From IMG/VR virus record IMGVR_UViG_3300043399_000297, positions 62,001 to 126,000 of that record: DNA of 64,000 nucleotides, one strand, 5' to 3'. Both the position numbers and the translations under genes were made by a program. This document shows positions 26,057 through 37,177 of the stretch, in pieces. Below the pieces are notes generated by a model, which did no database searches, had not been told where the DNA came from, and worked only from the letters and a program-made list of their open reading frames with translations. Numbering within the stretch: the first letter of the stretch is position 1; every line of letters begins with the position of its first letter.

Positions 26057-29000
26057 ATGCTACGTGATGTATTTTACTATGGACAGAAACCAAACGTTCA
26101 TCCGAGAGAACAGTTTGCTAAAGATTTAGAAGATGCTAGGAATAAAGCGACTACTCGTGACTTTTGGATAATCAACGAATTCTGCGATTATCGTAATTTT
26201 AATTGGGATTTCGATTTTGAGTTTCTCCCAGATGAAGATGTATGGGCAGAAGATCATAACAATGTATGGCCTAGCCAACATCAAAAAGATTCAGGAACCT
26301 GGTTATGCCCCAAACAGCATAGTGACTTAATTATATATCGGTGTGATGTTGATCCTATCTGGCGCAAGAACGAAAAGCAAAGTGTTAATTGGGTTGAATT
26401 AGATTTAATTGACCATACTAAGTTTGACTTTAGTTGGCATCCTGATCCTACTGATCCTCCTTATATCTATAAGTGGGGATGCAAATATTATCCTGCTCAA
26501 ATCAAGCACGTATTAGAATATCGTGTTCCGGGCTCAACTCAAGAAAAATTTATGGATATTTCTGCGGAACTTTTGCCTGACTGGGATAAATGGGTAATAC
26601 CTGACAGTATAAATAAATCCGGGTTTGATTTTTCTTGGAGACCCAGTCCTCTTGACCCGCCGCTTATATATGAATTTGGAACGCAATGGCAAAAGGATGG
26701 TGGACCGATTTATGTTGCTAGTGGAGCAACTAAAAGGAAGTATATCAATGATCAAAAAGCTACGAGGATTGCTTCAAACGAAAATTGGACGATTCCTGAC
26801 AATATTGATATTGCTGGATTTGATTTATCATGGCATCCAGATAATATTAGTCCTCCTTATATCTATGTATTTGCTACTCAGTGGGCACTCAGTGGCGGAC
26901 CTGTTTACACAGTTCCTGGCGCAACTGAAATCAAATATGTAGACGCTCAGGTAGCTACTGCACTCCCCGATAAAACAAATTGGATATACAACGAAGAAGA
27001 AATTGACGTTTCTAGTTTTGACTTCAGTTGGCATCCCTTTTCAGGGGACGACCCTTTCATCTATCAGTTTGGTACTCAATGGCAAAAGACTGGAGGTCCG
27101 AAATATATTACTCCGGGCGCGGATGAATCAAGCCCGATCAAGTATGTTGATACTCGTATTATCAAAGCTACTCACCTGCCTGACAAAAACAAGTTCATTG
27201 TATTGGGAAACAATGCTGTTCAGGAGTTTGATTATAGTTGGCATCCAGATGATACAGAAGATCCATATATCTATGTGTTTGGCAATCAATGGCATACAGC
27301 AGAAGTTATGCCAACCATTGAATACAGGATGACTGGCGCAACCCAATACAAGTATATAAATGATACTATTGCTATTCTTGGTCCTAATATGACACATTGG
27401 TTTTACGACTCAAACGAGATAGATGTTTCTGATTTTGATTTTAGTTGGTGTCCTAATCCCGGAGAACCTGAATTAATTTATGAGTTTGCTACTCAGTGGC
27501 AAAAGACTGGTGGTCCTAGATATATTGTGCCGGGTGCTACTGACGTAAAGTATTTAGACTTTCAAAAAGCAAGAGCATTGCCTTCTGAAAAAAATTGGAC
27601 AGTTCCTAGCAATATTGATGCAACGTTGTTTGACTTCAGTTGGCATCCTGATGCGACTAGCCCTCCTTATATCTATGTATTTGCTACTCAGTGGGCACTC
27701 AGTGGCGGACCTATATATACTGTACCGAACGCAACCGAATACAAATATGTCGATGAACAGATAGCTACTGCATTACCTGATATGACCAATTGGGTATATG
27801 ACGAAACAAAGATTGATGTTGAAAGTTTTGACTTCAGTTGGCATCCATATGTTGAAGATCAGCCATATATCTATCAGTTCGGTACACAATGGTGGCCAAC
27901 TGGTGGACCAAAATATATTGCACCGGGGGCAACAAGCGCAAGCCCAGTAAAATACATTGATACACGTATCATTAAAGCTAATACAATACCGGGTCTTGAA
28001 AATTGGGAAATTCCGGACGAGGTAGATAAAAGTAAGTTTGATTTTACTTGGATCCCTCATCCAGAAGACCCTCCCTATATATATGTGTTCGGCAATCAGT
28101 GGTTTAGTGCAGAAAAAATGCCCACTGTAAGATATATTGTTGAAGGTGCAACTGAAATTAAGTATGTTCGCGATATCATTGCTACAATAAAACCAAACAA
28201 AGACAATTGGACAATAGCTAATAATATAGTAGTGAAAGAGTTTGATTTTAGTTGGATACCAGATCCTCATTCTCCTCCTTATATCTATGTGTTCGGTAAT
28301 CAATGGTATTCAGCAGAAGAAATGTCAACTGTAGAATATCACACTCTTGGTGCTACTGAAAGAAAATATATTAATGATATTAGGGTTGTGTTAGACAAAA
28401 ACTTTACGAATTGGGAAATACCAAAAGGAATCGATGTTTCGCGATTTGATTTTAGTTGGATCCCTCATCCTAAAGCACCTCCATATATCTACCAGTTCGG
28501 CACCTTAAAGGATCCGTTGGATGGACCTAGATATATTACTCCAGGCAACAATGGAGAAATAGTTCGTGTACCAAGAATAGAACTTGATGAAATTGAATTT
28601 ATGCCTATCAATAGATATTATATTGAAACTACGTTGGATGACTTGATTATTAAACATCCAGATGAAATGTTCTGGGCGCTGAATAAAGAAATAGATTATT
28701 CTACATTTAACTTTGACTGGACCCCTTCATTGGACCAAGCAGATTATATTCAGGTATTCGGTCAAAGCTCAAGTATAAAAACTCAAACTTATTTGATCAA
28801 TTCTACATTGTGGACTAAAGGGTTGCGAGAGTTTAATTATGTAGAAGAACAAGAGAAAAAGACTGTTTCTGATTTGGATATCTTTTTTGTGGACAAAGGA
28901 AACTCAGAAGCTAATGAAAGATTCCATATACTAAAAAACAAGTTCGGCTCAAAGATTCAAAAGACACGATATCTCAACAGTTGGGTAGACACAATTAATC

Positions 29001-30604
29001 GCTGTATTAATCGTGCTACAAGTAATCTAATTTGGATTCTTAACAGCGAATTAGATTATTCTAACTTTGACTTTACTTATTACCCTAACCCTTGGCAGAT
29101 GAAGATGGTTCACGTATTTGGAACACAACATAGTCATTGGGGAACAACTTTTATGGTCAATCGCGAAACGTTTCCCGAAGATACAAAGTATATTAAAATC
29201 ATTGAACATTTGTCAAATCTAAACTTTGTCAAGGACATTAGAGCCAAAGCAACTGAATGTGTATATGATATTGTCATTATAGACCACAATAATATAGAAA
29301 GCTTATCAGTTACAGAAACGATGAAAAGAGTTTGGGCTCCTAATAGGAATGTTACTACTATAAAATATGAGGATAGTTATCTAAACACAATTCGTAACTA
29401 TGTAAAGAAGTTACCTGACAAAAAAGAACATTATCTTTGGATTTGCTCAAGCGTATGCGACTATACTAACTTTGACTTTAGTTATATATGTGATCCCTTT
29501 GCTAAAGATAATCTACACGTATTTCCCAGCAATAATCAAAAGTTTGGGGACACGTTCTTGTTGGATGTAAACAAGACTAAAGAAATCATAGATGATCTAG
29601 AAAAACTTGAAGATTATAATAAGGTGAGCTATAACAGTGCTACGAAGGCGAATAGATTGTTGCCACCAATCATCGTCACAGAAAATGATACGCATACCAA
29701 TTCATTAGAAACTATTACAGGATTTCCTTATGCAAGACTGATTACTAAGGACAACTTGAATGTTGAAGTTCCTGAGATTGAACCTATGAATCTATGGTCA
29801 CCTGAAACTAAGAACATTCAGGTACTAAGCACCGGTGCAACTCATATTGTAGCTCCTATAGAAATTAAAGATTATGTCAAGAAAGAACTATACGAATATC
29901 CATATATTAAACGCGCTCCAAAGTTAGCATTGTCTAATCCTATTGATATCGTGTTCTTGAGCAACGGTGAAATTGGTGCAGAAGAAAACTATGAACATCT
30001 ATTGAATATCACTAAGAACTTGAAGAACCGTGTAGTGAGAGTAGATGGGGTGAACGGTCGTGTTGCAGCATATCATAAAGCAGCAGAAGCTAGCGAAACG
30101 CCGTGGTTCTTCACGGTGTTTGCTAAGTTGAAGGTTAGTCCCAAATTTGATTTTAACTGGCAACCTGACAGAATGCAAATCCCCAAGCACTACATCTTCC
30201 ACGCAAAGAATCCTGTCAATGGGTTGACATATGGTCACCAGGCAATGATTGCATACAACAAAAAGCTTACTCTTGCTAATGAGGGATATGGACTAGACTT
30301 TACATTAGATGACGAACACGAGGTTGTGCCACTTATCTCTGGTACCGCACATTATAATACAGATGAATTTTCTACTTGGAGAACAGCATTTAGAGAGGTA
30401 ATCAAGCTTAAAGCAGACATTAGTGATATAGCCAAAGATAGACTTGATGTATGGTTGAATAAAGCAGAAGGTGACTTTGCTCAATATAGCATTAAGGGTG
30501 CATTGGATGCTGATGAATATTATGATGAAGTCAATGGCGAGTTTGACAAACTCAAGCTAAGCTATGAATGGGATTGGCTACGCAAAAAGTTTGGGGAAAT
30601 GTGA
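26057..30604 (+). CDS. 1515-aa protein with tandem FDFSWxP/PYIY repeats and degenerate GT-A-like domains
   Basis: 11 internal repeats of about 65 aa; C-terminal domain homologous to ORF 1703 (DIVFLS, RVDGVNG, WRTAFREVIK). Confidence 0.75.
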   Translation: MLRDVFYYGQKPNVHPREQFAKDLEDARNKATTRDFWIINEFCDYRNFNWDFDFEFLPDEDVWAEDHNNVWPSQHQKDSGTWLCPKQHSDLIIYRCDVDPIWRKNEKQSVNWVELDLIDHTKFDFSWHPDPTDPPYIYKWGCKYYPAQIKHVLEYRVPGSTQEKFMDISAELLPDWDKWVIPDSINKSGFDFSWRPSPLDPPLIYEFGTQWQKDGGPIYVASGATKRKYINDQKATRIASNENWTIPDNIDIAGFDLSWHPDNISPPYIYVFATQWALSGGPVYTVPGATEIKYVDAQVATALPDKTNWIYNEEEIDVSSFDFSWHPFSGDDPFIYQFGTQWQKTGGPKYITPGADESSPIKYVDTRIIKATHLPDKNKFIVLGNNAVQEFDYSWHPDDTEDPYIYVFGNQWHTAEVMPTIEYRMTGATQYKYINDTIAILGPNMTHWFYDSNEIDVSDFDFSWCPNPGEPELIYEFATQWQKTGGPRYIVPGATDVKYLDFQKARALPSEKNWTVPSNIDATLFDFSWHPDATSPPYIYVFATQWALSGGPIYTVPNATEYKYVDEQIATALPDMTNWVYDETKIDVESFDFSWHPYVEDQPYIYQFGTQWWPTGGPKYIAPGATSASPVKYIDTRIIKANTIPGLENWEIPDEVDKSKFDFTWIPHPEDPPYIYVFGNQWFSAEKMPTVRYIVEGATEIKYVRDIIATIKPNKDNWTIANNIVVKEFDFSWIPDPHSPPYIYVFGNQWYSAEEMSTVEYHTLGATERKYINDIRVVLDKNFTNWEIPKGIDVSRFDFSWIPHPKAPPYIYQFGTLKDPLDGPRYITPGNNGEIVRVPRIELDEIEFMPINRYYIETTLDDLIIKHPDEMFWALNKEIDYSTFNFDWTPSLDQADYIQVFGQSSSIKTQTYLINSTLWTKGLREFNYVEEQEKKTVSDLDIFFVDKGNSEANERFHILKNKFGSKIQKTRYLNSWVDTINRCINRATSNLIWILNSELDYSNFDFTYYPNPWQMKMVHVFGTQHSHWGTTFMVNRETFPEDTKYIKIIEHLSNLNFVKDIRAKATECVYDIVIIDHNNIESLSVTETMKRVWAPNRNVTTIKYEDSYLNTIRNYVKKLPDKKEHYLWICSSVCDYTNFDFSYICDPFAKDNLHVFPSNNQKFGDTFLLDVNKTKEIIDDLEKLEDYNKVSYNSATKANRLLPPIIVTENDTHTNSLETITGFPYARLITKDNLNVEVPEIEPMNLWSPETKNIQVLSTGATHIVAPIEIKDYVKKELYEYPYIKRAPKLALSNPIDIVFLSNGEIGAEENYEHLLNITKNLKNRVVRVDGVNGRVAAYHKAAEASETPWFFTVFAKLKVSPKFDFNWQPDRMQIPKHYIFHAKNPVNGLTYGHQAMIAYNKKLTLANEGYGLDFTLDDEHEVVPLISGTAHYNTDEFSTWRTAFREVIKLKADISDIAKDRLDVWLNKAEGDFAQYSIKGALDADEYYDEVNGEFDKLKLSYEWDWLRKKFGEM
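26385..28560 (+). repeat. Coding tandem repeat array (11 units of about 200 bp) with an 810-bp higher-order duplication
   Basis: Unit is NW...ID...FDFSWxP...PYIYxFGxQW...Y..PGAT..KY; 51 bp are identical at 26852-26902 and 27662-27712. Confidence 0.85.
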
Positions 30605-30642: not shown

Positions 30643-30677
30643 AGAACATAGTTCAATTTATCTTGAAGGATATTAAA

Positions 30678-31055
30678 ATGAAGAAGATTGTGTCAGCTAT
30701 TGCCCTCGCTACAGTGCTTTTTTCTAGCACTGCTGCTCTTGCAGACGGTCGCGATTATCGCTGGGGAGTAGACAGCAATCGTCATAGCCCATATTACGGT
30801 AGAAATTATGATCGTGGATATGATCGCAATTATGATAGGCATCGTGATGGTGGTGTAAGCACAGGAGGTGCTGTTGCAATTGGGCTTGGGGCATTGATCG
30901 TTGGTGCATTGATTGCTAATGGTAATAGGAATAATCGCAACACCTATCAGGATCAGCAGCAGTATTATCAGCCACAGCAGGTTTGTGAAGATATCATCAA
31001 GTATGACTATTACAATAACCCCTATGTTGCTGGTAGAAATTGCTGGTATAGATAA
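30678..31055 (+). CDS. Secreted/membrane protein with signal peptide and glycine-zipper helix
   Basis: MKKIVSAIALATVLFSSTAALA signal, RxYD repeats, GGAVAIGLGALIVGALIA. Confidence 0.65.
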   Translation: MKKIVSAIALATVLFSSTAALADGRDYRWGVDSNRHSPYYGRNYDRGYDRNYDRHRDGGVSTGGAVAIGLGALIVGALIANGNRNNRNTYQDQQQYYQPQQVCEDIIKYDYYNNPYVAGRNCWYR

Positions 31056-31058
31056 AGA

Positions 31059-31087
31059 TTGACATTTATATCACATTGTGATATATA
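31059..31087 (+). promoter_or_regulatory. sigma70 promoter of the tmRNA with a palindromic spacer
   Basis: TTGACA-17-TATATA, containing TATATCACA-T-TGTGATATA. Confidence 0.75.
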
Positions 31088-31093
31088 AAGTTA

Positions 31094-31446
31094 TCAGTTG
31101 TTGATACAATCTGATGTTTGTGCAGGACCCGGGGGCGGTACCCGGCAGGTCCACCATCAACCTTGTCACTGTAGCTAGTGAAAGCTGACTAGTGAAAAAG
31201 GATAAACCTGTCGAAGGAGGATAAGCTCTCCGGGGGACGGGGGAATGGCCCGCTCGACATGCGGGAGGACAAGGTTGTTGATGGGCCTGAAACAGGATCG
31301 ACTGCAAGGCGGAGGTGAGAGTAGACTGATTGGTTGGTCGCATATAGACCAAAATAAACAACTGCAAATGATAATGACTTTGCATTTGAATTGGCTCTAG
31401 CAGCCTGATTCATTGGGTATGGCTCCACCCCGAAACAGAACGGGCC
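31094..31446 (+). ncRNA. ssrA: Circularly permuted two-piece tmRNA (alphaproteobacterial type)
   Basis: Acceptor piece ends GGACCCGGG-GGCGGTA-CCCGGCAGGTCCACCA (31156). Coding piece starts GGGCCTG (31283), giving a 7-bp acceptor stem with a G3.U70 pair. Tag ORF 31364-31408 reads ANDNDFAFELALAA*. Outer ends are approximate. Confidence 0.93.
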
Positions 31447-31470
31447 TCTTTCCATACAGATAAATACAGT

Positions 31471-33999
31471 ATGGACATTTCAGAACTCGCCAATTTCAAT
31501 TTAAGTGATGCAGTATCTTTTCACGAGGAACTAAACCCACAGCTTTGGGAAGACCACAAATTAGACAGAGAAGTTCGTGATCAGTTATTGTTGATTGCAG
31601 AAGACTTTGTAGAATATCTTGGTATTGGTACACTTAAAGTAAAAGATGTTACTATCAGTGGTAGTAACGCTGCATATTCATATACTCCCCACAGTGATTT
31701 AGATTTGCATATCATAGTAGATTTTAATGATCTACCTAACGATCCAGTGTACCAAGAACTATTCACTGCTAAAAAAACAATATATAATGAAATGCACGAT
31801 ATAACGGTTCATAGTGTTCCTGTAGAATTATATGTGCAAGATATTAATCAACCTGTGCAGTCATTGGGTGAATATAGTATTGTTCACAACAAGTGGATTC
31901 GTATTCCTAAAAAGCGTAGAGCTAACTTTGACGAAGTTGCTACTAAAGCCAAATATGATAAACTAGCTGACTTGATTGAACTTACATTGAAGTCAAAAGA
32001 CTATAATAAAGTGAAAAATACACTTGATTTGCTCAAGCGTTATCGTAAAGCTGGGTTGGAAAAAGAAGGTGAGTTTGGTCCTGAAAATCTCGCATACAAG
32101 GCTCTTAGGAAGCAAGGTGCTGTAAAAGATTTGTTTGATCTTAAAGCTAGGCTTCACGCTGAACGGTTGAGTATTGAAGAAGATTCAAAATTACTTGACA
32201 AGCCGGAAATGACTATAGCACAGTTAGCAGAGAAGCACGGTGTATCTCGTATGGAAATTGCAACGCAGTTGGACAAAGGCATTAAGGTTGAACTTGAACA
32301 CACTAGTCATAAAAATGTAGCTCGTGAGATTGCATTAGACCATATTGCTGAGGATCCAAAATACTATGATAAATTATCTAAGGCTGAGTTGGAAGAAGAG
32401 ATTGTAGATGAAACCGCAGAAGAAAATCAAATAATTAGCTTGATAGCTAAACACGCGGCTGATAATATCGTAGACATAATGCAAGTTAAAGAAAATGCAT
32501 TTTTATCATTTATACAAGCAGGTATGACTCCCAAACACAATCTTACAGTGTTTGGTGTCAAAATCAAAGATTTAGGTATTCCTAAAGTCAAGGATCCCAC
32601 ATTAGCAAAATTGTTAAAAACTATGGAAATCAAGGTTAAAACTTCTAAAAATTGGGAAAATGATGAGGGTATAAAAACGCACGGTAGTTATTATCCCGGA
32701 GAAAATTATATTGAACTTTATTTTCCGGCTCACGAGTTCACTGCTAAAAAAAGAGATTCATCATTGCAAGTAGAAATAGCAGACACACTTGCTCACGAAA
32801 TACAACACGCATTGGATGACTTTAAAAGTAAAGGAAACGCATTTAAAGATTTAGCATCTTATTCAGGTGGTAAAGATTATGAATCATACTTAAAACTTCC
32901 ATATGAAGTAAATGCTAGATTCCAGCAAGCAACTATGGATATAGCAAAGTATATAGCTACACCGAAAAAAGATGGATCAAGAACTACACAAAAAGATTTG
33001 CCCGAATTGATTAGATATGCGTTTGAGAAAAATCAATTAAACAATATATATAGAAAGAACCAAGCAGAATATAAGCGATTACTCACTAGAGCATATAAAT
33101 TTTTTCAAGCAGAATTAAATGCTCCCAAGAAAGCAACGCCTCAGAATATAGTAAGTAGGGCAGTCAATTGGATATTAGGAAAGCCTACTACACAGGTTAA
33201 GGAAGCATCAGGATATATCCCCAGAAAAAAAGAAAATAACTATTTAGGCTGGGAATTCACAAAACCAAAACCTGATTATTGGATGATGCAAGAAGCGGTT
33301 GAAGAATATTACAAGAAAGATGGTAAATGGTTTCCCCACAGAACACACGGAATTCATCAATTGGTCACTAGACAGGAATTACGTGAATCTATGCAAGATG
33401 AAGTCAAAGAATTCTGGAACCAAATGATTCGTTTAGACGGTCGTAAAGAAGTAAAATTAAAGCCCGGTAGTTCAGTTAGTGTCATACAATGTTGGTCTCA
33501 TCCTTATGATTCTATATTTGAGTTGAGGGGCAACTTAAACCCTAAAAAAATAGCAGATGTATATTATGAGGATGGAGGATCAATCAGTTATATACAATTT
33601 GAAGACGGATCAACATTCCCGGACAAATCATTTCTAGACCGAGGACAAGGCGGAGAATTGGATGGTATCATAACTACTTTCTTTCCGTCTAAGCAAGCAG
33701 CCGAACATATGTTGACTGCTTTACGGTTAGTTGTTCCTGCTGGATGGAAATTAAGCACCGCTAACTTAAACGAATCTTCGTTGAATGAAGCCTCGGGATA
33801 TATTCCAAGTAAAAAAGAAAAGAACGACCCTCGCTTCAAGACTGCCCTCACTGTAGATGTAAAGCCAGACAGCATCAAAAAGAATGCTAATGCGTTCAAC
33901 TGGAAAACATCGCGGGCCGGCATTCCTCCCCAGGCTAGATCAGATGGCAAACTAGCAGAAGATTTGATGAAAGAGTTTAAAAACTTTTTGGGTAAGTAA
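31471..33999 (+). CDS. Modular protein: Pol-beta-type nucleotidyltransferase, small helical domain, HExxH zincin-like domain and unknown modules
   Basis: ISGSNAAYSYTPHSDLDLH..VELYVQD; GIKVELEHT..IALDHIAEDPKYYDKL; LAHEIQHALD..EVNARF; duplicated EASGYIP. Confidence 0.7.
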   Translation: MDISELANFNLSDAVSFHEELNPQLWEDHKLDREVRDQLLLIAEDFVEYLGIGTLKVKDVTISGSNAAYSYTPHSDLDLHIIVDFNDLPNDPVYQELFTAKKTIYNEMHDITVHSVPVELYVQDINQPVQSLGEYSIVHNKWIRIPKKRRANFDEVATKAKYDKLADLIELTLKSKDYNKVKNTLDLLKRYRKAGLEKEGEFGPENLAYKALRKQGAVKDLFDLKARLHAERLSIEEDSKLLDKPEMTIAQLAEKHGVSRMEIATQLDKGIKVELEHTSHKNVAREIALDHIAEDPKYYDKLSKAELEEEIVDETAEENQIISLIAKHAADNIVDIMQVKENAFLSFIQAGMTPKHNLTVFGVKIKDLGIPKVKDPTLAKLLKTMEIKVKTSKNWENDEGIKTHGSYYPGENYIELYFPAHEFTAKKRDSSLQVEIADTLAHEIQHALDDFKSKGNAFKDLASYSGGKDYESYLKLPYEVNARFQQATMDIAKYIATPKKDGSRTTQKDLPELIRYAFEKNQLNNIYRKNQAEYKRLLTRAYKFFQAELNAPKKATPQNIVSRAVNWILGKPTTQVKEASGYIPRKKENNYLGWEFTKPKPDYWMMQEAVEEYYKKDGKWFPHRTHGIHQLVTRQELRESMQDEVKEFWNQMIRLDGRKEVKLKPGSSVSVIQCWSHPYDSIFELRGNLNPKKIADVYYEDGGSISYIQFEDGSTFPDKSFLDRGQGGELDGIITTFFPSKQAAEHMLTALRLVVPAGWKLSTANLNESSLNEASGYIPSKKEKNDPRFKTALTVDVKPDSIKKNANAFNWKTSRAGIPPQARSDGKLAEDLMKEFKNFLGK

Positions 34000-34045: not shown

Positions 34046-34318
34046 ATGACTAAGACATTCAACACCGCAGAAGAAGCTAGGTCCATAATGTATGACATTA
34101 ACACCGAGCTAGGTCGTCTCCCTTATAACCCAGACTTGAGTAAGTTTTGCTATAACATCTGCGATATGGTGACAGAACTTAGTCGCCTCGAGGTATACAC
34201 CCGTCGCACTCCTCCCCGTTCTAGATATCATATTGAATATAATAAGAAGCGCGAAACCATTCGCGATGCCATCAAGCATCTAGAGAACCTAGTCCTCATG
34301 GCTAGGTTGATGGCATAA
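34046..34318 (+). CDS. Hypothetical early protein
   Basis: 90-aa ORF directly behind a promoter. Confidence 0.7.
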   Translation: MTKTFNTAEEARSIMYDINTELGRLPYNPDLSKFCYNICDMVTELSRLEVYTRRTPPRSRYHIEYNKKRETIRDAIKHLENLVLMARLMA

Positions 34319-34579
34319 AAAATATCCACTTAGGCAAAAAAGTGGTTGACATTTGCCCAAAACCTCTGTATATATAGTATATCAAAAGCGAAAAAGGAAC
34401 TTGATATGACTGATCGTGAACTGTTTGATGCAATCATCGTCGCTTACAATGCTAATCCTTCTTATGAGCTTGAAGAACGCCTCCAGATTCTCTGGACCGC
34501 AACTCGTGCCCAGCTCGTTGAACTATACAACGAACTTTGTGCATAAAAAATATCCACTTAGGCAAAAAAGTGGTTGACA
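34313..34579 (+). repeat. Perfect 39-bp direct repeat (34313-34351, 34541-34579) carrying a stop codon, a hairpin and a -35 box
   Basis: GCATAAAAAATATCCACTTAGGCAAAAAAGTGGTTGACA twice; each copy is followed 17 nt later by a -10 box (TATATA, TATAAC). Confidence 0.92.
34406..34546 (+). CDS. 46-aa early hypothetical protein
   Basis: AAGGA RBS, ATG at 34406, own promoter, bracketed by the 39-bp repeats. Confidence 0.7.
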   Translation: MTDRELFDAIIVAYNANPSYELEERLQILWTATRAQLVELYNELCA

Positions 34580-34660
34580 CTAACATCAAGATAGCGTATA
34601 ACGAGACTATAGAGAGCAAGAAAGTAAATCTCTCTACTAACTTAAACTAGGAGCTAATTT

Positions 34661-35761
34661 ATGTCTCAAATGTCTGATACCCTCACTGTTACTTCGATCC
34701 AGGCGCGCAAGGCTATTCTTGCTGCTTTCAAGGCAAAGCGTCCTGTCTTCCTCTGGGGCCCTCCGGGCATCGGTAAGTCGGAAGTCGTTCAGGAAATTAC
34801 TGAGGAACTCGGTGGTTATATGGTCGATCTGCGTATGGCGCAGATGGAACCCACTGATATTCGTGGTATCCCCTACTACAACAAGGACCTCGGCAAGATG
34901 GATTGGGCCGAGCCCGTCGATCTTCCCAGCGCAGAACTTGCTGCTGAATACCCCATCGTTGTTCTCTTCCTTGACGAAATGAACTCTGCTCCCCCGGCTG
35001 TTCAGGCTGCTGGTTATCAGCTTATTCTGAACCGTCGTGTTGGTAAGTATAAGCTGCCCGATAATGTTGTTATCGTTGCTGCTGGTAACCGTGACAGCGA
35101 CAAGGGCGTTACTTATCGTATGCCGATGCCGCTTGCTAATCGTTTCGTTCACCTTGAAATGCGTCCCGACTTCAATGCTTGGCAGCAGTGGGCTGTTCAC
35201 AAGGCTGTTCACAAGGACATTGTTGGTTATCTCTCGTTCGCTAAGCAGGATATGTATGACTTTGATGCAAAGTCTTCTTCTCGTGCTTTTGCTACCCCGC
35301 GTTCGTGGGTGTTCGTGAGCGACCTGCTCGTTGACGAGGACAATGTTGACAACGATACACTGTTCAATCTTGTTGCAGGTTCTGTCGGTGACGGTCTTGC
35401 TACTAAGTTTATGGCACATCGTCGTGTTGCTGGTCAGATGCCTGAGCCGATCGACATTCTCGACGGTAAGGTAAAGGACCTCAAGGTCAAGGAAATCTCT
35501 GCGATGTACTCGCTCACGATTTCTATGTGCTACGAACTCAAGGACGCACTTGATAACAAGCGTGTTGACAACAAGCAGTTCCACGTGATGGCTGACAATT
35601 TCTTCGAATACATCATGAAGAACTTCGAAACTGAACTGGTTGTGATGGGTGCGAAGATTGCGCTCAAGACTTATCGTCTGCCGATTGAGCCCTCGCAGCT
35701 TTCTAATTTTGACGAGTTCCACAAGAAGTACAGTAAGTATATCGTGGAAGCTGGCAACTAA
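34661..35761 (+). CDS. MoxR-type AAA+ ATPase
   Basis: GPPGIGKS, LFLDEMN, AAGN, LANRF, TPRSW. Confidence 0.9.
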   Translation: MSQMSDTLTVTSIQARKAILAAFKAKRPVFLWGPPGIGKSEVVQEITEELGGYMVDLRMAQMEPTDIRGIPYYNKDLGKMDWAEPVDLPSAELAAEYPIVVLFLDEMNSAPPAVQAAGYQLILNRRVGKYKLPDNVVIVAAGNRDSDKGVTYRMPMPLANRFVHLEMRPDFNAWQQWAVHKAVHKDIVGYLSFAKQDMYDFDAKSSSRAFATPRSWVFVSDLLVDEDNVDNDTLFNLVAGSVGDGLATKFMAHRRVAGQMPEPIDILDGKVKDLKVKEISAMYSLTISMCYELKDALDNKRVDNKQFHVMADNFFEYIMKNFETELVVMGAKIALKTYRLPIEPSQLSNFDEFHKKYSKYIVEAGN

Positions 35762-35774
35762 GCTAGCGGCTCCT

Positions 35775-35809
35775 GGGGAGAGGTTCGAGACAGCCTCTCC
35801 CCTTTTTTT
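35775..35809 (+). terminator. Rho-independent terminator
   Basis: GGGGAGAGGT..GCCTCTCCCC followed by T7. Confidence 0.85.
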
Positions 35810-35812
35810 CGG

Positions 35813-35841
35813 TTGACATTCCCTTCAAGGTTTGTTATATT
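35813..35841 (+). promoter_or_regulatory. Early sigma70 promoter
   Basis: CGGTTGACA-17-TATATT. Confidence 0.75.
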
Positions 35842-35866
35842 GTCTCTATAAAGCAAGGAGATTTTT

Positions 35867-37177
35867 ATGAGTCAAGTTATTCCCGGTACTGCGACTAAGC
35901 CCAAGAAGGGTAAGCGCACTCGCAGCCAAAAGTTTGAAAATCTGATCGGTCCGACTGATCCTAAGATTGACCACGAAGCTCGTGAACGTCTGATCACTGC
36001 TCGTATTGGTCTCCTTCTTCGTCATAGCTTTTTCGGCAACCTCGCTACTCGTCTCCAGCTTGTAAATGCTGACGAGTGGTGCTCCACTGCTGCTACTGAC
36101 GGTCTTCGTTTTTATTACAACAGTCGTTTTATCAAGATGCTTAAGACTAAGGAGGTTGAATTCCTCGTTGGTCACGAAGTGCTTCACGTAGTCTACGATC
36201 ACCTTGGTCGTCGTGACAGTCGTGATCCTGAAATCTGGAACATCGCTAACGACTATGCTGTTAACGCTGACCTTAAGCGTCACAAGGTCGGTGAAATGAT
36301 CACTACTGTTCCTGCTCTCTTTGAGCCTAAGTATGATGGTAAGGCTTCTGAGGAAATCTATGATGACCTTATGAAGAATGTCAAGTATATTGACATTGAT
36401 GAACTCCTTGACAAGATGCTTGACGATCACCTTGAAGACGAGGGTCAGGGTATGGGTGATGAAGACGGTGATGAAAATGGTCAGAAGGGTAATGGCAAGC
36501 GTCCTAAGATGAGTCCTGAGGAGCGTGAGCGCGCCCGTCAGGAGATGAAGCAGGCTATCATCAATGCTGCACAGAGTGCCGAAGCTGGTTCTATCCCGGC
36601 TGGCGTTCAGCGTATGATCAAGCAGCTTACTGATCCTGTTATGCCCTGGCGTGAACTGATCCAGACGAACCTTACTTCGTCTATCAAGAGCGATTACACT
36701 TGGATGCGTCCTTCTCGTCGTTCTTGGCATATGGATGCTGTTATGCCCGGTATGAACCCGGGTGAAGAAATCGATGTTGATATCTATATCGATATGTCGG
36801 GTTCTATCTCTAACAAGCAGGGTATGGCATTTCTTTCGGAAGTCGCCGGTATGATGGAAGCGTTCGATGGTTATTCGCTTCGTGTCACTTGCTTTGATAC
36901 TCGCTGCTATAACACACAGGAGTATACTAGCGAGAATATGGAGAATATCGAGGAGTATGAGCTTGCAGGTGGCGGCGGTACTGACTTCGACTGCATCTTT
37001 GACGACCTTAAGGAAGCAGGACGTGTCCCGGTTCGCTTGATCGTATTCACTGACGGTTATCCTTGCGGTAGCTGGGGTGATGAGGATTACTGTGATACGA
37101 CTTGGATCATTCACGGTGATCCCAATCCGAACCCGCCCTTCGGTACGTATGCTATCTATGACGACCACAGAAAGTAA
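35867..37177 (+). CDS. Metallopeptidase-like plus VWA domain protein (DUF2201-type), partner of MoxR
   Basis: TAATDG, HEVLH, WNIANDYAVN, DMSGS (MIDAS), GGGGTDF, FTDG. Confidence 0.88.
   Translation: MSQVIPGTATKPKKGKRTRSQKFENLIGPTDPKIDHEARERLITARIGLLLRHSFFGNLATRLQLVNADEWCSTAATDGLRFYYNSRFIKMLKTKEVEFLVGHEVLHVVYDHLGRRDSRDPEIWNIANDYAVNADLKRHKVGEMITTVPALFEPKYDGKASEEIYDDLMKNVKYIDIDELLDKMLDDHLEDEGQGMGDEDGDENGQKGNGKRPKMSPEERERARQEMKQAIINAAQSAEAGSIPAGVQRMIKQLTDPVMPWRELIQTNLTSSIKSDYTWMRPSRRSWHMDAVMPGMNPGEEIDVDIYIDMSGSISNKQGMAFLSEVAGMMEAFDGYSLRVTCFDTRCYNTQEYTSENMENIEEYELAGGGGTDFDCIFDDLKEAGRVPVRLIVFTDGYPCGSWGDEDYCDTTWIIHGDPNPNPPFGTYAIYDDHRK

Follow-up and report, generated by a model that had tools for sequence, protein, structure and literature searches.

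The window analysed here is a stretch of 64,000 nucleotides (nt), bases 62001-126000 of a 244-kb virus record (IMG/VR IMGVR_UViG_3300043399_000297) that comes from a freshwater metagenome and is estimated to be 71% complete. It contains P0001, an open reading frame (ORF) coding for a polyvalent protein in which a nucleotidyltransferase, a small helical domain, a zincin-like metallopeptidase, a further alpha+beta module and a short conserved tail follow one another in a single chain. Comparison of P0001 with its homologs indicates that a short motif, (L/I/V)xE, is kept at all junctions between modules, regardless of which module is adjacent. This motif resembles the sites at which the prohead protease of bacteriophage T4 cleaves its substrates, and the relationship between the two is the subject of the present report.

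Modules of P0001 and its protein family

P0001 and its parts are arranged as follows.

31471..33999, + strand: ORF P0001, polyvalent multi-module protein of 842 amino acids (aa), uninterrupted, with no internal stop
31471..32181, + strand: module A, nucleotidyltransferase of Pol-beta type, aa 1-237 (model domain: residues 10-233)
32167..32181, + strand: junction 1, LSIEE, aa 233-237, end of the nucleotidyltransferase, with low-pLDDT linker 235-243
32215..32388, + strand: module B, DUF5661 helical domain, aa 249-306 (PF18905, E 2.1e-12, 47.7 bits against a cut-off of 27; pLDDT about 90)
32386..32412, + strand: junction 2, ELEEEIVDE, aa 306-314, with sites LEE and VDE and low-pLDDT linker 306-311
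32413..33138, + strand: module C, zincin-like metallopeptidase, aa 315-556
33193..33240, + strand: junction 3, QVKE (575-578) followed by ASGYIPRKKENNYL, aa 575-590, within low-pLDDT stretch 556-593
33250..33780, + strand: module D, alpha+beta, aa 594-770 (pLDDT 85-95 for residues 640-768)
33763..33789, + strand: junction 4, NLNESSLNE, aa 765-773, predicted cut after E773, with low-pLDDT linker 770-779
33790..33960, + strand: conserved tail, aa 774-830, starting with ASGYIPSKKEKNDPRF and ending with GKLAE (pLDDT 41-65)
33961..33999, + strand: remnant of a post-tail linker (DLMKEFKNFLGK) and the stop codon

A structure model built from an alignment of 81 collinear natural segments (mean pLDDT, the confidence score of the prediction, 77) contains four confident domains with low-confidence linkers between them. 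AlphaFold2 prediction from the single sequence of the whole protein reached a pLDDT of 39.6 and was unusable, and structure searches with the whole model, Foldseek among them, were dominated by helical-bundle noise.

Module A, which matches phrog_36119 (E 1.9e-41), is composed of a catalytic core (residues ~33-145) and a helical domain (155-233). It bears the marks of Pol-beta enzymes, namely hG[GS], DxD and a third carboxylate located on the core sheet, whose strands the model places at 57-63, 77-83 and 116-124. Residues G64, S65, D76, D78 and E119 are invariant in 65 aligned homologs. Foldseek probability was 0.98 to AAD(9) and 0.99 to the nucleotidyltransferase 2rff. The nearest solved folds (AadA/ANT(3'')(9), MNT, AAD(9), CdnD/E) and the nearest predicted ones (GlnD, class I adenylate cyclase, DrrA) are all weak and none stands out. 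An earlier, sequence-only reading of the window had named the CCA, MNT and CD-NTase families for comparison; structure searches place module A in neither the CCA-adding nor the CD-NTase family, and MNT is found only among the weak neighbours. Features in common with ANT(3'')(9)/AadA, MNT, DrrA/GlnD and CD-NTase are the Pol-beta fold, G[GS], DxD and the third carboxylate, with a helical domain behind them. No RNA-binding domain was found in structure searches. Judged by its nearest folds, the best guess is that module A would nucleotidylylate a protein or a small molecule.

The zincin contains HEIQH at aa 442-446 (nt 32794-32808) and a presumed third zinc ligand, E479 (nt 32905-32907). As in other zincins, HExxH is located on one helix and the Glu ligand on the next, accompanied by a three-stranded sheet. 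The motif HE[IL]QH and the downstream PYE[VI]NARFQ are kept in the aligned zincin modules, so that the enzyme, intact in its catalytic residues, is probably active. Its nearest named neighbours are LPD23, SprT-like, Zn_peptidase, an HExxH domain (8s5f) and models labelled "large polyvalent protein associated". Both enzymes claimed by the sequence-only reading, the nucleotidyltransferase with its GS, DxD and E residues and the zincin, are thus real, with catalytic residues kept. For module D, no usable relative was found by sequence, by language-model features or in the Atlas structures, PDB, AFDB or BFVD, and region-restricted homolog searches for the zincin and module D added nothing to the first search. 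The tail is basic, predicted mostly disordered, and has (L/I/V)xE on either side.

The family of P0001, as defined by exhaustive HMMER search (E <= 1e-3, representative clusters), comprises 7,820 clusters with lengths of 240-2,288 aa; 257 homologs were fetched for counting architectures. Two blocks are near-constant. At the N-terminus the nucleotidyltransferase is often 75-80% identical. The tail is present in ~240 of the 257 homologs; its start reads ASGYIPSxKEKNDPRF, and its invariant positions are G, Y, I, P, D, P, R, L, T, D and P. Between proteins that otherwise differ, the tail is 80-90% identical and the nucleotidyltransferase ~78%. All else varies: the modules include DUF5661, DUF6934, GNAT, ART-PolyVal (PF18760), ParB_N, NUDIX, GIY-YIG and Tpt1-like domains, as well as cytidine deaminase, M48, amidoligase, HD, methyltransferase, Zeta toxin, M23 and PAP2. 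They are located between nucleotidyltransferase and tail or behind the tail; module D is found in either position and also stands alone, as the 250-aa protein P0252. Short members such as P0167 are made up of nucleotidyltransferase and tail alone. In relatives, the post-tail linker ends with FLxE and is followed by a further module such as ART-PolyVal. The swappable modules postulated by the sequence-only reading are therefore borne out, and the invariant architecture that it had set against itself is not seen. The zincin occurs in only ~40 of the 257 homologs, or about one in six, and must therefore be regarded as a cargo module and not as the general processing enzyme of the family.

Junctions, tail and the inserted module

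Each of the four inter-domain linkers in the model holds an (L/I/V)xE site. P0001 has 20 such sites altogether (0.024 per residue versus 0.015 in the ORFs of its genome), which is mildly unusual; because the sites of one protein cannot decide the matter, the signal of a junction rule lies in conservation across the family. Counting back from the putative cut, the glutamate occupies position P1 and the hydrophobic residue P3. Of 68 unique contexts upstream of the tail, 67 have E at P1 and 63 have L, I or V at P3; P2 and P4-P8 vary freely and the upstream modules are unrelated to each other. Of 55 unique contexts behind the tail, 51 read GK-[LIV]xE and 42 have a second site, FLxE, at which the differing downstream modules start. 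The nucleotidyltransferase ends with L[ST][IL]xE (P3 L/I/V, P1 E) in 96 of 135 unique contexts; right behind this motif, homology to the varying next modules stops. Most of the listed contexts upstream of module D have (L/I/V)xE a few residues ahead of the module start. Even the N-terminus conforms: P0001 begins with MDISE followed by L, and most members with M(D/N)(I/L)xE-L.

In T4, the prohead protease gp21 cuts after Glu in motifs of this type, and cleavage of the Alt protein at ITE-6 and LTE-619 removes 63 aa from its C-terminus (PMC5694885). Processing of the T4 capsid-targeting sequence is decided by its positions 8 and 10, corresponding to P3 and P1 (PMC9026906). At the level of sequence, P0001 likewise carries (L/I)xE at the boundaries of its pieces. 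The proposal that (L/I/V)xE sites form module borders is well supported by their conservation exactly at the junctions throughout the family. All junction strings listed by the sequence-only reading are present, and LSIEE, ELEEEIVDE, QVKE and NLNESSLNE fall into linkers; the string LRE (637-639) was ruled out as a junction, homologs keeping residues 594-775 as one block.

The T4-type prohead protease invoked by the same reading has a counterpart in this genome, which encodes a Peptidase_S77 protein. Two head genes of the record are of particular relevance.

Record IMGVR_UViG_3300043399_000297: major capsid protein of gp23 type (326 bits)
Record IMGVR_UViG_3300043399_000297: Peptidase_S77 (T4 gp21-type) prohead protease at contig C1:4354-4989, minus strand (98 bits, cut-off 27)

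The order of head genes is T4-like: portal, protease, a 369-aa ORF without known family, capsid. Capsid proteins of Vibrio phage 2.275.O, Sinorhizobium phage Phosso, Pseudomonas phage PA5oct and E. coli jumbo phages (~350 kb) share 63-68% identity with the one encoded here. Capsid identities and T4-like head genes together mark the virus as an uncultured jumbo myovirus distantly related to T4. An S77 protease co-occurs with members of the P0001 family in 4 of 4 records that are at least 90% complete and in 8 of 8 records longer than 200 kb. The remainder of the genome, on contig C1 outside the window, also contains a single open frame of 6,752 aa (C1:34949-55207, +).

The peptide EASGYIPxKKE occurs twice in P0001, at residues 578 and 773 (nt 33202 and 33787), with a spacing of 585 nt or 195 codons. 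The sequence-only reading saw in it a duplicated junction around an insert of ~190 aa. The two copies and the insert are confirmed, and the motif is more than a junction, being the start of the ~57-aa conserved tail; the first copy is thus a truncated tail start standing ahead of module D. As relatives without module D pass directly from zincin to tail, the ~190-aa stretch is truly an insert. At the DNA level the repeat copies, 42 nt long, are 83% identical, and several mismatches are synonymous ones at third codon positions; the peptide has therefore been kept by selection and is no fresh scar. Partial copies of the tail start also precede module D in P0013, P0026 and P0031, in varying states of decay, and other relatives have a plain (L/I/V)xE at this place. 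These copies fit an insertion of module D together with a copy of the site, in agreement with the idea that new modules are acquired by junction duplication.

Promoter-like signals and neighbouring genes

Upstream of P0001 lie a transfer-messenger RNA (tmRNA), a promoter-like motif and a potential RNA hairpin; three genes follow downstream.

31055..31449, + strand: two-piece (permuted) tmRNA of alphaproteobacterial type, tag ANDNDFAFELALAA (Rfam RF04321 93.5 bits, RF01849 83.2 bits; ARAGORN)
31451..31475, + strand: RNA hairpin with arms 31451-31457 and 31469-31475 (7 bp), pairing all three AUG bases, with the motif in its loop
31459..31467, + strand: GATAAATAC, motif resembling a late promoter (a variant of the T4 late box TATAAATA), separated from the ATG by 3 nt
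34046..37177, + strand: 90-aa ORF without family, MoxR-like AAA+ ATPase and DUF2201 metallopeptidase/VWA protein, in an order kept in loci L005 and L009
34661-35761, + strand: the MoxR-like AAA+ ATPase
35867-37177, + strand: the DUF2201 metallopeptidase/VWA protein

The sequence-only reading had pointed to a TAAATA ending 4 nt before the ATG of P0001. It was right to do so: this hexamer is part of RATAAATAC, a late-promoter-like motif common to virion genes of the phage. Simple counts put neither TAAATA, TATAAATA nor RATAAATAC above chance (three RATAAATAC in the window versus 2.6 expected; 8 + 7 TATAAATA observed versus 21 + 17 expected), and the motif was judged by position instead. In the genome, 20 of the 25 ATAAATAC sites are intergenic against an intergenic fraction of 6.4% (p ~5e-20); with composition-matched 8-mers, 7.8% of which are intergenic, the excess has p about 1e-18 or smaller. 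Nineteen of the 25 are located within 45 nt upstream of a gene start on the same strand. The genes behind them encode the portal, the tail tube, two virion structural proteins, a baseplate-like protein, a 2,456-aa protein (the frame at C1:168128-175498) and homing endonucleases. Because of this position before virion genes, ATAAATAC is taken as the counterpart of the T4 late box TATAAATA, and it behaves like this phage's version of it. Among IMG/VR contigs with family members, 42 distinct upstream sequences have xTAAATA 4-7 nt (mostly 4) before the ATG, following a tmRNA, an ORF or a terminator.

Examples of ATAAATAC sites are C1 138033, 180155, 186918, 232182, 240768 and 1887(-), and window positions 31460, 43937, 46099 and 54507. 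At ~8 of the 25 sites the distance to the nearest ATG is 3-5 nt (5 sites when called gene starts are used); other sites have a gap of 16-24 nt with a GGAG-like ribosome-binding site. The short gaps suggest that some late genes of this phage use leaderless messenger RNAs (mRNAs). The same would hold for P0001, where there is no room for a leader between motif and start codon.

The hairpin that encloses the motif has a predicted energy of -7.5 kcal/mol (RNAfold; z -1.6). Its counterparts in loci L005 and L007 are more stable (-12.7 and -10.3 kcal/mol, z -3.5) and differ in stem sequence, that of L007 included. The z-score falls below -2 in 13 of the 42 related contexts, and the hairpin is thus not universal; some loci lacking it have a terminator-like GC hairpin and T-run just upstream of the motif, which would fit a role in the same logic. 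Such logic is known from T4 genes e, soc, 49 and I-TevI, where early read-through RNA is untranslatable and RNA from a late promoter inside the structure is translated (PMC3014915). In T4 alt, a terminator is followed by TATAAATA, and the protein starts with MELITE and then LF.

Eight family loci (L061, L062, L067, L077, L079, L086, L087 and L090) lack the late motif and have instead Pro/Lys-rich coding-like sequence (...ccaaaaATGAAC) ahead of the nucleotidyltransferase start. This upstream sequence indicates that in these loci the nucleotidyltransferase may be fused to a further N-terminal part.

The tmRNA ends 22 nt upstream of P0001 and is preceded by a sigma-70-like TTGACA box at ~31060. 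A tmRNA is present upstream in 19 of 60 related loci, all of them nearer relatives, and in the flank of none of the other 41. Locations in relatives include L009 5621-5982 and L005 5124-5476, besides the 19 of the 60 loci within L021-L099, and their tags read VAANDNNVDLALAA, ANDSVYALAA and ANDETFALAA. The alphaproteobacterial type of the tmRNA is a hint that this clade of freshwater jumbo phages infects Alphaproteobacteria.

Each of the three downstream genes lies behind a TTGACA-type promoter-like site, and similar boxes stand ahead of the tmRNA, ORF 30663 and ORF 34046. An identical hairpin (CCACTT...AAGTGG) immediately followed by TTGACA is found at 34326-34351 and 34554-34579 (+), preceding a small ORF at 34346 and the MoxR-like ATPase gene, respectively; hairpin and box may constitute a repeated early-promoter cassette. 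In the 130-aa ORF at 30663-31055 (+), a hydrophobic stretch at the N-terminus resembles a signal; the protein also has repeats rich in Arg, Asp and Tyr (NYDRGYDRNYDR), another hydrophobic segment and a tail rich in Gln, and matches no family. Further upstream, directly after a carbamoyltransferase-like gene, a 1,515-aa ORF at 26057-30604 (+) contains about a dozen repeats of a ~75-aa unit (FDFSWHPD...PPYIYxFGxQW...GGPxY) and has no Pfam or PHROG match.

Candidate function and related systems

We propose, with about an even chance of being correct, that P0001 is a polyvalent cargo that is made late, packaged into the head and cut by the prohead protease, resembling T4 Alt without sharing its sequence. 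From the features described above we infer the following course of events. Transcription late in infection would start at RATAAATAC and probably give a leaderless or nearly leaderless mRNA, and early read-through RNA from the tmRNA promoter would be held untranslated by the AUG hairpin. The protein would enter the prohead core, for which the disordered tail, its most conserved part, is the best candidate targeting element. The prohead protease would then cut after Glu at the junctions and free separate enzymes, which would be ejected with the DNA and act on the next host ahead of any phage gene expression.

A more far-reaching version of this proposal is put forward only tentatively. It holds that the ~57-aa ASGYIPS tail is a portable capsid-loading signal; that modules flanking it behind (L/I/V)xE are loaded, cut by the prohead protease and not by zincins, and injected; that new modules bring or duplicate the site; and that the late mRNA is leaderless, its start codon being masked in early read-through. 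When the prohead protease was modelled together with the tail segment, the prediction gave no verdict (score 0.00, without controls) and speaks neither for nor against these proposals.

Several observations weigh against packaging and processing. The tail had no match at E <= 1 in a tblastn search of 50,697 phage records, so that no isolate among them has it, and it resembles no known capsid-targeting sequence. The nucleotidyltransferase end reads LSIE[NSGTD] in 29% of contexts, where P3 is not L/I/V. The hydrophobic-x-Glu motif could represent the first residues of a folded or binding element and not a cleavage site, and the cut rule of the clade's protease is carried over by analogy from T4 gp21. 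The gap of 4 nt between box and ATG makes the presumed late promoter depend on leaderless mRNA. The sequence was found only in DNA runs of a freshwater metagenome and in no RNA run. Finally, the P0001 gene sits among non-structural genes, a location that it has in common with T4 alt.

Delivery of an intact polyvalent protein, which stays whole or is cut by its embedded zincin, is an unlikely account, even though the published model gives zincins a processing role and N4 vRNAP and ArdC travel uncut (PMC5512222). The conserved HExxH and downstream Glu of the aligned modules make zincin activity probable in its own right. As a general mechanism, self-cutting is at odds with the distribution of the parts, the zincin being confined to the minority of homologs counted above and the junction motif and tail being nearly universal; moreover, the motif fits the rule of a Glu-specific serine protease and no known zincin specificity. 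P0001 might also never be packaged; it would then be a multi-enzyme protein of the cytoplasm, made late and acting in the producing cell (on defence systems or competing phages, for instance), its conserved ends being mainly homology arms and (L/I/V)xE a habit of linkers. The position of the gene outside structural blocks agrees with this, as does the lack of a recognisable targeting sequence in the tail, and flanks as conserved as the nucleotidyltransferase and the tail would favour recombination. Against it speak the repeat copies, which differ synonymously at the DNA level and keep the peptide, so that the peptide itself is selected, and the fact that P3 and P1 are kept while P2 and P4-P8 vary. 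Together with the late motif common to virion genes and the parallels to T4 Alt, this renders the non-packaged protein rather improbable in our judgement.

Least probable by far is a role in which the nucleotidyltransferase cooperates with the tmRNA next to it or acts on the 3' ends of RNA by CCA-like repair or tailing; the sequence-only reading had derived this idea from their adjacency. That link proved weak: besides the 41 of 60 loci whose flank is without tmRNA, tmRNA and ORF carry separate signals, a sigma-70-like promoter for the former and a late motif with an AUG-masking hairpin or upstream terminator for the latter. These separate signals and the tmRNA-less loci make the adjacency look like clade-level synteny and not functional pairing. 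The best fold neighbours of the nucleotidyltransferase are ANT, MNT and CD-NTase types, the structure searches found no RNA-binding domain, and some phages have solo homologs that lack such a neighbour.

Proteins that a phage injects along with its DNA are active ahead of all phage gene expression and so decide the first minutes against host defences. To our knowledge, only a few such co-injected proteins have been studied, T4 Alt and IPI for example. If the cargo proposal is true, thousands of uncultured jumbo phages carry a catalogue of first-strike enzymes (nucleotidyltransferases, ADP-ribosyltransferases, acetyltransferases, deaminases, NUDIX hydrolases and peptidases) whose boundaries, marked by conserved cut sites, would be readable from sequence. 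Cleavage by the head protease would then replace the proposed self-processing by zincins for the P0001 family, and the short conserved tail would become a candidate signal for loading foreign proteins into large phage heads, a use to which the T4 targeting sequence has already been put. The occurrence of a late motif 3-5 nt from start codons is relevant to annotators of such phages. The general idea of virion-delivered polyvalent effectors and Alt-like cargo has already been published as a prediction. The nucleotidyltransferase head, the ASGYIPS tail, the T4-type junction rule implying trans-processing and the late motif abutting the start codon were not described in the literature found by a non-exhaustive search.

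Of the known systems, T4 Alt and the internal proteins IPI-III share with P0001 a T4-like phage, an S77 protease, a late-promoter-like box upstream and a gene outside the structural clusters. Alt in particular has the N-terminal hydrophobic-x-Glu followed by Leu, a piece of ~60 aa behind LxE (LTE-619) and, as in many relatives of P0001, an ADP-ribosyltransferase cargo. The likeness does not extend to sequence: a BLASTP comparison between T4 Alt and a family member yielded E 2.1, no similarity, and the tail plus ADP-ribosyltransferase of a relative did not retrieve T4 Alt. Furthermore, Alt is a single enzyme with propeptides at its ends, whereas P0001 joins several enzymes in one chain with putative internal sites, as in a polyprotein. 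The ejection proteins of phiKZ, 201phi2-1 and SPN3US offer a parallel in jumbo phages, in which a gp21-related protease cuts head-internal cargo after Glu in a three-residue motif. Their proteins are unrelated to P0001, and their motif has a small P3, (S/A/G)xE, in contrast to L/I/V here, as in T4; a minority of nucleotidyltransferase ends in the P0001 family read S-I-E.

The closest concept is that of polyvalent proteins (Iyer, Burroughs, Anand, de Souza, Aravind 2017, PMC5512222; also PMC9503650). As in these, unrelated domains (nucleotidyltransferase, DUF5661, zincin, module D and tail) are joined in one phage polypeptide, and architectures are combinatorial, drawing on a common module pool that includes zincin, ART-PolyVal, GNAT, ParB, NUDIX and LPD-type domains; tailed-phage origin and predicted delivery at infection are shared as well. 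Published Pol-beta nucleotidyltransferases of polyvalent proteins are minimal and reported only from conjugative elements (PMC5512222), whereas a larger one with a helical domain heads almost every member of the P0001 family. Features that set this family apart are the fixed N-terminal module, the fixed tail of ~57 aa and the Glu-ending junction rule, the last of which points to processing in trans by the prohead protease over embedded zincins.

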